In this document: positions 48,121 to 58,977 of the stretch, piece by piece
Numbering within the stretch: the first letter of the stretch is position 1
How the letters are laid out: each line of letters opens with the position of its first letter
Origin: Salpingoeca rosetta
Taxonomy: Eukaryota; Protista; Choanoflagellata
Direction of reading: 5' to 3'
DNA: 64,000 nucleotides
Assembly: GCA_033442325.1 (NCBI GenBank)
Contig: JAWQFM010000006.1
Location: 234,704 to 298,703, forward strand
The notes under the pieces: generated by a model
Told to the model about the DNA's origin: nothing
The model's input: the letters and a program-made list of their open reading frames with translations, nothing else
Database searches by the model: none
Translations under genes and position numbers: made by a program

Positions 48121-51100
48121 ATGGCAATGGTCACTCCAGTCGTGGAGAAGGACAAGCACATGGTCCCTCCACAGGACCTTGTGCAGCCCAGCACAAGCAC
48201 AGATCAGGGACGCGAGCAGCAGCGCGATGATGACCTGGTGAGCGTGAACGTCGGGGGCTTTTGTGTGCGCGCGTGTGTGTTTTGTGTGTGTGTGTTGTGT
48301 GTGTGTGTGTGTTGTGTTGTGTTGTGTTGTGTTGTGTTGTGTTGTGTTGTGTTGTTGCTTGTATTGTGAGCGATGCCACCCAACACCAACTCGCTGCTGA
48401 TCCACCGCGGTTGTCCTCGACCAAACACAATACACGCGCACACACGCGCACACGCACACACACATACACACATACACACGCACGCACGCGCACATACACA
48501 CGCGCACGCACGCACTGCACAATGCGTTCAGGCTCGCATGCTGAAGCTGCGCATGACGGATCCAGAACTGCAGGCCACGGCGCAGCCACTGTCCGACCAG
48601 ATTACCGACAGCGTTGTCGACATGGTCACTCTTGCAGCACCGTGGTACCACGGTCGTAGACCAAGGCACTCGGTGCGTTGTGCGGTGTGGTTGTGTCATG
48701 GCGCGAGTTGGCACAGACATGCACGTGTGTGTAGGTCCCTTGTATGTACGTTTGTGTGATGGAGTGCGCAAAGGTGGGCTGCATGTGCCATGCCAAACCC
48801 GTTTAACCATGCCACTGCGTGCATGCATGCTGTGCATTCACTGCGCAGGTCAACTTTGCGCTGACGCCGGAAACGAAGGAGGCCGGCTCGTTTGCCATTC
48901 GCAAAGTCGGCGACGCTGTCCACGACGGATTCCAGCTCCACCTCAAGTACGCACACACGTGTGTGTGTCTGTGTGTGTGTGTGTGTGTGTGTTTGTGTGT
49001 GTGTGTGTCTGTCTGTCTGTCTGTGCGTCTGTCTGAGTGCATGTCTGTCTGTCTGTCTGTGCGTCTGTCTGTGTGTATGTGTGGAGCTTGCAGAGGAGTG
49101 CAAACAACACAAGTGCCACAGATGGGAGGGTCGTTTGCATTGGTGTGTGTTACATGATCTGATTGACACCGCGATGCGTGATCGTCACACACAGGACGGA
49201 TGAAGCCATATTGGAGCGCCACATTGAGGTGACGGCAAACGAGACTGTTCGCCTCGAGGGAACAACGGCCGAATACGAAACACTCTCCCAGCTCGTCGCA
49301 GCATACAGGTCAGCCACGCTGTTGGGTTGTGTGTGCGCGTGTGTGCTGTGTGTGTATGTCATGTGTTTGTTTGTTTGTGTGCATCTATCATGTGGTTGTC
49401 CGTGTGTGTGTGTGTGTGTGTGTCATGTACGTGCGTCACTTGTTTCCGTGCGCCTGTTTATGTTCTTCTTGCTGCGTTACACAATGCTCCACGGCCTCAT
49501 GCTTGCGCGTTGTACTGCTTGCATGCAACGACAGTGACGGCAGTGAGAGCGAGGGGGCGTTGCCTTTCCCGCTGCTCAACCCCGTGCGGATGCGCGCGAA
49601 CACGTTTGGCAACACAGACGCGTCCACCGCCGGCCCCGCCCCCGACGACGACGGCATCACGGTGCGAAACACAACCATGCCATGCCATGCCATGCGCACT
49701 TGCATGCGCAGTTCATGTGTGGTCGTGATCAGCCGTCGCCTTGTTTGCAGTTGTGTTGGCGCGTGCGCATCCATGTGTGAGTACACACCGGTGCGTTCGT
49801 ATGCGTGACTACGGCCTCACCTTGCACCATCACCCCCGCCCCCTTCACGTGTCCTTCGCGTCGTCACGTCACGTTTCGTGTGTCGACAGCACGCTGCGGA
49901 CGGGGAGCCGTGGAAGATTGCAGACGTGTGCGATTGGCTCGAAGACCTTGGCCTCAGCAAATACACGTCAGCCACTGCCATGGCCCTTTCTCTCACTGCT
50001 CTTGCACCCCTGCATGTGTGTCTGTGTCTATGTGTGTGTGTGTGTGTGCATGCTATGATGTGGGTACAACTCCGCCCCTCTCCATCACGTTTCTGAACTT
50101 GACCCCTCACCATTACCCGATCGCCCCTTCAATATCACCACCACTCCCTAAAACAACACATCACCAGGCCTGCCTTCCGTGATCGTGGCATTGATGGCGT
50201 GCGTCTGCTGAACATCGACCATCTTGACCTGCAGCAGATGGGGGTCGACCCCCACGACGCCCGCGCAATCATGCGCAACGTCGCTGCCCTCAAGGCACAG
50301 GTGCGATGGTGCTGTAATGTGTGTGTGTGTGTGTGTGTGTGTGTGTGTGTGTGTGTGTGTGTGTGTGTGTGTGTGTGTGTGTGTGTGTGGCTGATCTTCG
50401 CGATGTGTTGCAACAGTTTCAGCAATCAGCCATCCATGCTCACACTCCGCGTCCCAACGTGTGCGTGTGTGCATACTTGCTCATGTGTGTGCAGACGGTT
50501 GAGGTGTCGAGTGAGACGCCGAGTTGGGTCCGCCGCACGCTCGTCGTCAAGGAACTCGATGTGGGTTGAATGAATGAAGGGGGCGGGGTGTGCTGACGTG
50601 ACGTTGTGTGTGTGTGTGTGTGTGTGTGTGTGTGTGTGTGTGTGTGTGTGTACGTGTGTGTGTACGTGTGTGTATGTGTGTGTGTACGTATGTATGTGTG
50701 TGTACGTGTGTCATTGGTGGTTCATCCATGCGTGCAGCAAGTGTTGACAAGACTGACCGATGCTGTGCACCACTGCGTCACGTTCCTCTATTTCCCGTTG
50801 CGCCATTTGCCAGGGGGAGCTGCGACTGTTTGACGCTGCGAGCGGGGAAGAGGTGTACCAGCTCGCACACGAGATTGCTCGACAACTGAACTTTGCACCC
50901 CCGTCCTCAGCCACCACAATCAAGTGAGCACGCGTGTGCTGTGCTGTGCTGTGCTGTGCTGTGCTGTGTTGTGTGTGTGTGTGTGTGTGTCTGCGTTTGT
51001 GTGTGTGTGTGTGTGTTTTCAGTGTCTCCATGATGTGGCATTGCTTGTCACTTCCTCACCACGGCTTGCACACCACCCCCCTTCCATTGCTGTAGATCCT

Positions 51101-57100: not shown

Positions 57101-58977
57101 CGCGTTCCCTCTCGGACACGTTCGTCTCTGCGCGCCCGCGGCAGGAGGAGCGACTGACGCTCGAATCGCAACACGCAGCATCCATGCGCGCACGCACCCG
57201 CCCCGAGCTCTTCCGGGACGACGATGCGGTGAGCTGCAAATGCGTGGAGGACGTGGAAGATGTGCACATGCATGTGTGTGTGTGTTGGGGCGTGAGTGTA
57301 TCTTGCTTTTGTGTTTGCGTGAGTGTGTATTGGTTTCTTTTTTTCTTTTTTGTGTGTGCATATTGCCTGCTGTTCACCCTTCCATCATCCACTCACTCCT
57401 GCACTTCACTACCTCCACCATCGTGCACCTCATCAACCCTCCCCTGATGTGCCAGCGGTTCTTCGTGCAGCACGCCGACGACCGCTCTGCAGAGCTGACG
57501 GCGATGCGCTCCGACCGCACACTCAAGTGGCGGTCCTTCACAGACAACACGGTGCGCTGGTGATGGCAGCACATTGTCCACTTGGATGGGTAATGGAGTG
57601 GGGTGGAGGACACATTGTCTCGATTACCGCTTGTGATGGTTGCCACAACACCCCCGCTCATATACATACACATGGCTCGTGAACTCCCACTCACTCACAT
57701 ACACACGCTTACCCACAAATTGAAACACCTCGCCCACCATTGGCCATTGCAGCTGCCACTGGTCGGAACGGTTCAGAGCTCGCGGGAGATGCGACGTCAC
57801 CAACAGCAGCAACAACAGCAGCGGCACCAGAAGCACACGCACCGCCGCACGCGCCAGCACCACGCCAACGGCAGGTGAGCCCACCGGTTGCTGCAAGATG
57901 CGTGCGCGCGTGACGCTATTTCTGGTTTCATGTTGTGAACTGATGGCTGCAAACCCCTGTACTTGGTTGTCTACTCACGTCCTTGTTCATGCCCTTCACC
58001 TCTCTCCCGACCACGCTTCTCGCTTGCTGCTCCATTCATGATGACAGCCGCACCTTCGACGACAACCTGTTTGGCAACGTAAGCACGTGCTTATCCTGCC
58101 CGCTCCCACCGCTGCACACATCGAGTCTCGAATTGAATTTGTACTCACACGTCATCACTCACGCTGGCACGTTTCTCCCTGGTTTGCTTCTCTATCTATG
58201 TGTGTTTCTCTCTCCCCCCCCCCCCGTTGTGAATGCGCTGCTGCTGTCTCTCGACTGCATTAGCGCGAGGATGCTGTGAAGCGAACCTGCCGCCAACTCG
58301 GCCTCTACACAGACCCGACAAGCCAATCGTGAGTTCCTCTTTTGTGTGTGTGGTTTTGTGTGTTTGTGTGTGTTTGCGTATGTATTTGTGTTTTTGAGTG
58401 TGCTATTGTGTGTGATGTGTACTTGGGTGTGCTATTGTGTGTGATGTGCACTTGCGTGCGCGCGTGTGTGTCATGTTTTCGTGCGCAACTTTGACATCGC
58501 ACTGACATGATGTTCTCTTGTGGTTGATGGCTTGAAGGTGGATGTGCATCAAGCAGCCATTGGCGGACGTGCGGGTAAGTTAAAATGTGAGGTGGTTGAG
58601 GACATGGGCTAGTGATTGTCGTTGAACTTTCATTGTCTGCACAATTGTGACCAGACTCACATCTGCAACTCACCCACACCCACACACACACACACACATA
58701 CACCGCTGTTCCCTTTCGTGCTTTTCTTCAACTGCAACAGCATCTACTGAGACACCAGGGTGACTTTGTGGTGCACAAGTCAGCGCACGGCAATTACGCG
58801 TGCCTGACAATGCAGCACGAAGGGAACGCCGTGTCGTTTGAGATGGTGCGCCGCAACGGCGGGCTTGGGCTCCTCGACTCGCGCGAAACCTTTGATCGCC
58901 TCACCCGCCTGATCGAGCACTACGTCCACCCGGCGCAGACAGACCTGCCGGCCTCTCTCGGTCCAAACTCCATGTGA
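48121..58977 (+). CDS. Non-catalytic multi-SH2 / SAM adaptor: SH2-SAM-SAM-(SH2)x6
   Basis: About 30 exons. SH2 cores PWYHG...GSFAIRK, GGFAVVRH, PWFS...GSFVVFPS, PWFRP...DGAFVVRK, PWLQ...DGAFVVRSS, AWLV...GTFIIRES, SWMC...GDFVVHKS, each followed by a (F)xxLxxLVxxY-type helix. SAM cores WKIADVCDWLEDLGLSKY..AFRDRGIDGVRLL and WSVDDMCAWLQHVNL. Confidence 0.88.
56575..56833. repeat. Intronic (GTT)n tract periodically interrupted by TTTAA
   Basis: Seen directly in an intron of the SH2 gene. Confidence 0.85.

Follow-up and report, generated by a model that had tools for sequence, protein, structure and literature searches.

Locus and gene model

The window analysed here is the whole stretch of 64,000 nucleotides from the choanoflagellate Salpingoeca rosetta that was under study (contig 6, 234704-298703, of the 55.4-Mb genome assembly). 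Its subject is PTSG_00984, a gene whose product is predicted to combine seven SH2 domains and two SAM domains. PTSG_00984 is an already annotated, uncharacterised gene, and is recorded in NCBI and UniProt as "SH2 domain-containing protein" or hypothetical protein (XP_004998456.1, EGD76281.1, F2TY22; 1258 aa). Exon-wise Pfam scans came first; the public protein, reached through the relative searches described below, was then mapped along the genome.

The public protein matches the window with 100% identity and maps codon for codon to 32 exons on the forward strand, where all parts of the gene described below also lie. The coding sequence (48121-58977) comprises 1258 codons plus the stop, and runs from an ATG at 48121 to a stop codon at 58975-58977. 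All introns (31/31) are GT-AG with consistent phases, and none is longer than about 500 bp. PTSG_00984 is a single-copy gene; a search of its own genome shows zero paralogues. On the basis of the annotation and of orthologous transcripts from other species, the locus is read as one gene.

Most of the introns, between 48.2 and 58.7 kb, consist largely of microsatellites such as (TG)n/(CA)n and (CTGT)n. These repeats give rise to long spurious low-complexity open reading frames (ORFs) in several frames. Among the repeat tracts are about 110 bp of (CAA)n at 53630-53740 and about 250 bp rich in CTG/TTG at 56590-56840.

Domain architecture

From the N terminus to the C terminus, PTSG_00984 is composed of SH2-1, SAM1, an element termed X, SAM2 and a block of five further SH2 domains (SH2-2 to SH2-6); SH2-7 follows after a linker of about 160 residues. 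An earlier, sequence-only reading of the window had proposed the spliced order of the SH2 and SAM domains and a gene span of 48121-58977. The order agrees with that of the public protein, the span is exactly that of its 32 exons, and the nine domain positions given in that reading agree with the mapped domains within a few bases.

Sub-ranges of the public protein were scored with the Pfam SH2 profile (PF00017; curated cut-off 21 bits), and six of the seven SH2 domains exceed the cut-off. SH2-1 (48637-49308; aa 75-157, exons 2-4) and SH2-3 (52798-53485; aa 564-650, exons 15-17) are full-length matches of 27.6 and 25.9 bits, respectively. Scores of 54.7, 34.3 and 39.2 bits were obtained for SH2-4 (53816-54578; aa 668-752, exons 18-20), SH2-5 (54953-55617; aa 807-898, exons 21-23) and SH2-6 (56029-57048; aa 919-1003, exons 24-26), and SH2-7 (58321-58950; aa 1166-1250, exons 30-32) scores 21.3 bits. 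For SH2-2 (51847-52743; aa about 459-545, exons 12-15), the sub-range scan gives zero match. The exon-wise scans, which were performed on stop-free pieces of the window, detected SH2 matches at 53.8, 54.9, 56.0 and 58.7 kb, complementary halves of one SAM domain (profile positions 3-23 and 23-65) at 49.9 and 50.2 kb, and a partial SAM domain at 51.4 kb. SH2-1, SH2-2 and SH2-3 were missed by these scans because each is split across three to four exons, which is no evidence against the domains themselves.

SH2-2 is divergent, and its assignment is based on profiles and models. When the profile of the SH2-2 orthologues was aligned with that of SH2-4 using hhalign, the probability was 96.3% (E 1.7e-9) over 84 columns. 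Against the Protein Data Bank (PDB), the SH2-2 profile gave weak matches, nearly all of them SH2 domains, and the best was the SH2 domain of SHIP2 (E 0.008). An AlphaFold (AF2) model from six orthologues has the secondary structure order H-E-E-E-E-H, with a predicted local distance difference test (pLDDT) score of 82.7 and a predicted template modelling (pTM) score of 0.76. In a Foldseek search of the PDB with this model, the top 50 matches are all SH2 domains (SHP2, RasGAP, Csk, SOCS and others; probability 1.00, TM 0.6-0.76). SH2-2 is thus, by prediction, an SH2 fold despite the failure of Pfam.

SH2-7 gave 98.7% and E 3.7e-16 by hhalign, and its profile matches the SH2 domains of PLC-gamma and p85 in the PDB (E 4e-11 to 5e-9), the best being a PLC-gamma1 SH2. 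The best PDB relative of SH2-4 is the C-terminal SH2 domain of ZAP-70/Syk (E 2e-17), and the C-terminal SH2 domain of PLC-gamma is also among its best matches.

SAM1 (49902-50297; aa 204-268, exons 6-7) is detected by Pfam SAM_2 and SAM_1 with 54.1 and 47.6 bits. Its PDB matches include the SAM domains of liprin-beta1, Shank2 and SARM1 (E 4e-10 to 1e-5), and the SAM domain of SHIP2 was matched as well. SAM2 follows a set of beta strands (51127-51582 together; aa 339-428, exons 10-11) and reaches 20.4 bits with SAM_2, whose cut-off is 20.5. The orthologue profile of SAM2 matches the Shank2 SAM domain with E 1.4e-5, and the matches to Shank2, DGK-delta, neurabin and SARM1 span E 1e-5 to 1e-3. 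The AF2 model of SAM2 is a five-helix bundle (pLDDT 81-92), and every top match of this model in Foldseek and VIA is a SAM domain (Z up to 7.6). As modelled, SAM2 is therefore a SAM domain, though it lies just under the Pfam cut-off. Polymerising SAM domains are known from TEL, Ph, Shank3, DGK-delta and tankyrase. The closest solved relatives of SAM1 and SAM2 include SAM domains of this polymerising kind, a resemblance at the level of the fold only.

The seven SH2 and two SAM domains of the sequence-only reading are therefore supported, six SH2 domains and SAM1 by Pfam, and SH2-2 and SAM2 by profile-profile or PDB profile comparison together with the fold. That reading would have been in doubt if several of the domains had failed as SH2 domains; SH2-2 alone fails Pfam, and it is rescued by hhalign, AF2 and Foldseek. 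The absence of a kinase, phosphatase, SH3 domain or transmembrane segment had also been proposed. SH2 and SAM are the only families in the precomputed Pfam list of the full-length protein, and kinase, phosphatase, SH3, PTB and PH domains were not found in it. A transmembrane segment is ruled out by the hydropathy profile, since the 19-residue Kyte-Doolittle mean peaks at 1.52, within a beta strand of SH2-2.

The X element (50519-50894; aa 278-318, exons 8-9) is predicted to form a beta hairpin and a helix (AF2 pLDDT 64-72). It is conserved in the orthologues, with a mean pairwise identity of 0.37. Pfam and PDB profile searches returned no match for the element, and a VIA structure match covered the SAM part only; the approximately 70 residues between SAM1 and SAM2 likewise have no Pfam match. 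The element is followed by an acidic loop and then by strands with the pattern 'EFxWxGDxxGWVR' (51127-51200) that run into SAM2. The tail linker between SH2-6 and SH2-7 (57049-58320; about 160 aa, exons 26-30) has short motifs that are conserved, along with a stretch rich in Gln and His. It is collinear with the transcript ORF of Microstomoeca roanoka, and mean identity in its two halves is 0.32 and 0.19. The linkers of PTSG_00984 showed no conserved Tyr motif.

Orthologues and ancestry

To sample relatives, the 89-residue exon at 52660-52926 (SH2-2/SH2-3) was compared by phmmer with 1.84 billion representative proteins. Eight matches were obtained, and six of these are long multi-SH2 proteins or a fragment of one. 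The search returned choanoflagellate-type relatives only and zero animal proteins, which agrees with the earlier reading, whose author knew of no metazoan counterpart with this architecture. Word-index searches were also used. The M. roanoka query retrieved S. rosetta, Barroeca monosierra and Hartaetosiga balthica, and a Choanoeca flexa query added only Choanoeca perplexa. A search with the seven-sequence alignment retrieved two proteins only and missed some of its own members. No animal member was detected by the word-index searches, which is weak evidence given their word and length limits. The PTSG_00984 family has been seen so far in choanoflagellates only.

Collinear orthologues with the same domain order were identified in six other choanoflagellates, as the sequence-only reading had led one to look for: M. 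roanoka, B. monosierra, H. balthica, Salpingoeca infusionum, C. flexa and C. perplexa. With S. rosetta included, the order is shared by at least seven species. In M. roanoka, H. balthica, S. infusionum, C. flexa and C. perplexa, the orthologue is an ORF marked complete on a single de novo transcript contig, which independently indicates that all domains, the distant SH2-7 included, lie on one mRNA. The M. roanoka orthologue (1251 aa, 55% identical) can be followed through the window in exon order, with residue 32 as the first aligned position and the C-terminal residue as the last. The B. monosierra orthologue is a genome-predicted model. In this model (P0010), a class I methyltransferase that is absent from the other species lies C-terminal to SH2-7 (residues about 1255-1576), and is probably a run-on fusion with a neighbouring gene.

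A maximum-likelihood tree of 42 SH2 domains groups the domains by position and not by species. It requires 8 label changes, where the minimum is 6 and the shuffled mean is 29. SH2-2, SH2-6 and SH2-7 form well supported groups, and SH2-5 and SH2-6 are sisters (support 94/94). Because the domains cluster by position, the array of seven SH2 domains is older than the split of these species.

A distant relative of 1230 residues (P0006; L002) was found on a Logan contig from run SRR27980837. It carries SH2-1, the X element, a SAM domain of the SAM2 type and several SH2 domains, and is without SAM1 and SH2-7. This protein may mark the presence of the family beyond the sampled species. The X and pre-SAM2 region is kept in all orthologues and in P0006.

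The S. rosetta contig that holds the window also carries a second multi-SH2 gene, about 39 kb past the end of the window (contig 6, 337.6-342.1 kb; positions 2095-6626 of L001, forward strand). It has at least five SH2 domains in three long ORFs, with one, one and three Pfam SH2 matches (56, 49 and 101 bits). Identical scores for the first two of these SH2 matches point to a tandem duplication of about 630 bp in the recent past. This gene was considered as a paralogue of PTSG_00984 and rejected at 36-39% identity. The multi-SH2 design is not unique within S. rosetta, since the second gene has at least five such domains. Inside this genome, the architecture stands out less than the earlier reading implied.

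Phosphotyrosine-pocket residues

The Arg of the FLVR motif (position betaB5) coordinates phosphotyrosine (pTyr), and the only human SH2 domains without it are those of RIN2 and TYK2 (both His) and SH2D5 (Trp) (PMC7530234). The pocket residues of PTSG_00984 were surveyed in an alignment of all seven SH2 domains from six species. The betaB5 Arg is kept in 6/6 species in SH2-4, SH2-5 and SH2-6, and in 5/6 species in SH2-1. In SH2-3 it is replaced by Phe in S. rosetta, and the series across the six species is F/Y/F/C/F/H. SH2-7 has His in all six species, and its PDB alignment with the PLC-gamma1 SH2 domain sets this His on the FLVR Arg. SH2-2 has a conserved Arg, Arg490, that falls on betaB5 or betaB6 depending on the register, which is anchored on a Phe by hhalign and MAFFT and on the preceding Gly by HMMER. 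Judged by sequence, the betaB5 Arg is present in four domains, absent from two (SH2-3 and SH2-7) and ambiguous in SH2-2.

The remaining pocket is more restricted. An alphaA2 Arg or Lys together with a betaD4 His is kept only in SH2-4 and SH2-5, both of which have a canonical pocket. In SH2-4, the alphaA2 Arg, betaB5 Arg and betaD4 His are all conserved; SH2-5 has Lys at alphaA2, and its betaD4 His is present in 5/6 species. SH2-6 has a FIIRES motif, but Gln at betaD4. SH2-1 has the FLVR Arg, and the rest of its pTyr pocket is not conserved. The pTyr valency is thus below what the domain count suggests, and four or five of the seven domains look able to bind pTyr. The "highly multivalent pTyr reader" of the sequence-only reading overstates the valency, given that the FLVR Arg is found only in SH2-1, SH2-4, SH2-5 and SH2-6 and the full pocket only in SH2-4 and SH2-5.

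Conservation provides a further view of these domains. Mean pairwise identity is highest in SH2-6 (0.51) and second highest in SH2-5 (0.47); it is 0.40 in SH2-4 and 0.25 in SH2-1. The atypical SH2 domains show mean pairwise identities of 0.35-0.36, near SH2-4 and above SH2-1. As they are conserved about as well as SH2-4, the atypical domains are not decaying. In the linker between SH2-2 and SH2-3, the S. rosetta and M. roanoka proteins share 83% identity.

Proposed function and alternative readings

With moderate confidence, we read PTSG_00984 as an enzyme-less, cytoplasmic, multivalent pTyr adaptor that possibly oligomerises through its SAM domains. The number of pTyr-binding SH2 sites would be three to five. 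SH2-4, SH2-5, SH2-6 and probably SH2-1 are the candidate docks, because the FLVR Arg is kept in them and the whole pocket in SH2-4 and SH2-5. The short spacing between SH2-5 and SH2-6 would favour multiply phosphorylated partners, like that of tandem SH2 readers. SH2-3, SH2-7 and perhaps SH2-2, conserved but atypical, most likely make phospho-independent contacts, contacts of a phosphoserine/phosphothreonine (pSer/pThr) type, or intramolecular or structural contacts, and SAM1 and SAM2 may contribute self-association or hetero-SAM contacts. The net outcome would be a multivalent linker that brings receptors or substrates carrying pTyr together in larger assemblies. Condensate formation, clustering of receptor tyrosine kinases and SAM polymerisation are putative activities of such a protein.

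Several observations weigh against this adaptor. Three of the seven SH2 folds are without a canonical pocket, which reduces the pTyr valency. The alphaA2 Arg of SH2-1 is not conserved, and in H. balthica SH2-1 is decayed, with its Trp and Arg lost. Many SAM domains are monomeric or form heterodimers only, and the sequences of SAM1 and SAM2 do not reveal whether either polymerises. Among choanoflagellates the family appears not to be universal, as no Monosiga brevicollis orthologue surfaced in the phmmer and word-index searches, although the word and length limits of the latter make this weak evidence. The single-gene case leans on the annotation and on orthologue transcripts rather than on S. 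rosetta cDNA, and every functional step of the adaptor is one that we infer from residues.

A more far-reaching form of the adaptor, which we consider unlikely, is a natural, choanoflagellate-specific 'poly-SH2' polymer. Self-association of the SAM domains would create a high-valency lattice, with three to five working SH2 domains per chain, that condenses receptors with multiple pTyr sites and evolved independently of the animal SH2/SH3 adaptors. The Arg-less SH2-3 and the His-type SH2-7 would then represent a new class of SH2 domain that does not read pTyr, for example an autoinhibitory lock or a pSer/pThr reader. Such a lattice would be a separate route to clusters in pTyr signalling.

It is also doubtful that PTSG_00984 is mainly a phospho-independent structural scaffold, in which SH2 folds are re-used for protein-protein or intramolecular packing and the reading of pTyr is marginal. 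Precedents for such re-use are the FERM-SH2 unit of JAK and the tandem SH2 of Spt6. Two SH2 domains with a conserved non-Arg betaB5, and a third of ambiguous register, would fit such a scaffold, and the highly conserved linker between SH2-2 and SH2-3 suggests a rigid supradomain. Human His-FLVR domains such as that of TYK2 act within a larger receptor-binding module (PMC7530234). However, the betaB5 Arg of SH2-4, SH2-5 and SH2-6 is invariant in the six species, SH2-4 and SH2-5 have the full pocket, and SH2-6 has a textbook FIIRES motif. The scaffold is weakened by this conservation, which is hard to explain without binding of a phospho-ligand.

A role as a negative regulator or buffer, which masks pTyr sites from phosphatases or productive effectors instead of building clusters, is improbable. 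PTSG_00984 has no catalytic or effector-recruiting domain (SH3, PTB, PH or kinase), which leaves few signal outputs beyond the SAM domains and the X element and would suit a buffer. The two SAM domains and the conserved 160-residue tail with its conserved motifs are, however, plausible output surfaces. Lastly, it is very improbable that the locus represents two or more genes merged in error, with SH2-7, for instance, belonging to a separate gene beyond the 494-bp repeat-rich intron at 56531-57024: SH2-7 does lie about 1.3 kb of genomic distance past SH2-6 with several small exons (31-122 nt) between them, and the support for one gene comes, besides the annotation, from species other than S. 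rosetta, but the five independent de novo transcriptome ORFs cover every domain including the tail and SH2-7 in one frame, the 31 GT-AG introns have matching phases, introns of at most about 500 bp leave no room for a second promoter, and an N-terminal 'MAM' start is common to S. rosetta, S. infusionum and C. flexa. A split into several genes, the outcome that could have overturned the sequence-only reading, was therefore not borne out.

Implications

The PTSG_00984 family is a variant on the multi-domain SH2 adaptor that is conserved in at least seven choanoflagellates. Seven SH2 folds in one conserved protein, compared with a human maximum of two, represent a design not taken up by animals. 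Whether pTyr-dependent clustering predates or parallels the adaptor systems of animals is a question for which the family is a natural test case, and it supplies two conserved types of Arg-less SH2 domain. S. rosetta is genetically manipulable, so the ideas of an adaptor and of clustering are testable. Nothing is overturned by these results; the gene was annotated, and it fits the known lineage-specific elaboration of pTyr signalling.

Comparison with known systems

Unusual choanoflagellate SH2 architectures have been known since 2008. In the literature searched, PTSG_00984 is unmentioned and its family undescribed. Naturally occurring proteins with between three and seven SH2 domains were not found there either, although this architecture or a relative from M. 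brevicollis may be listed in the supplementary data of Manning 2008, Pincus 2008 or Liu 2011. The general background of the sequence-only reading is well founded. It stated that animal SH2 proteins carry one or two SH2 domains, and among the 110 known human SH2 proteins ten have two, the rest one, and none more (PMC10320075). It also referred to an expanded pTyr toolkit in choanoflagellates, and in M. brevicollis 143 SH2 domains are spread over 123 proteins (PMC4342544); given these totals, most of its SH2 proteins have one SH2 domain.

The closest counterparts in animals are SLP-76, the tandem SH2 enzymes and the multivalent adaptors of signalling clusters, and on its architecture PTSG_00984 belongs to none of these families. 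SLP-76 (LCP2) is, like PTSG_00984, an enzyme-less cytoplasmic adaptor that joins SAM and SH2 domains, and the LCP2 SAM domain weakly matches the SAM2 profile (E 0.018). The SAM domain of SLP-76 supports oligomeric microclusters. SLP-76 has an N-terminal SAM domain, its own pTyr and proline motifs and one C-terminal SH2 domain, whereas PTSG_00984 has two SAM and seven SH2 domains. Membership of PTSG_00984 in the SLP-76/LCP2 family was rejected on its architecture (SH2-SAM-X-SAM-SH2x5-linker-SH2); the two are not orthologous in sequence and the likeness is an analogy only. SHIP2 (INPPL1) also carries SH2 and SAM domains in one protein, and these match the SH2-2 and SAM1 profiles. It has a single SH2 and a single SAM domain and is itself an enzyme, a 5-phosphatase, and its resemblance to PTSG_00984 is at the level of the domain family.

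The tandem SH2 readers (ZAP-70/Syk, SHP2, PLC-gamma, p85 and RasGAP) share with PTSG_00984 closely placed SH2 domains that, in their case, read multiply phosphorylated partners. Their SH2 domains always number two and are paired with a catalytic or regulatory domain, whereas PTSG_00984 has seven and no enzyme. Assignment to Syk/ZAP-70 was rejected because the kinase domain is absent; only SH2-4 resembles the C-terminal SH2 domain of ZAP-70. The SH2 domains that lack the FLVR Arg (His in TYK2 and RIN2, Trp in SH2D5, and the C-terminal SH2 of Spt6) recall the conserved His of SH2-7 and the conserved Phe/Tyr of SH2-3, a likeness at one residue only that does not imply orthology.

Nck, Grb2 and Gads can form clusters or phase-separate with nephrin or LAT through multivalency and partners with multiple pTyr sites. 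By virtue of multivalency, they may be regarded as functional analogues of PTSG_00984. Each of these adaptors has one SH2 domain and gains its valency via SH3 domains, whereas in PTSG_00984 the valency would be built from the SH2 domains themselves and from the SAM domains.

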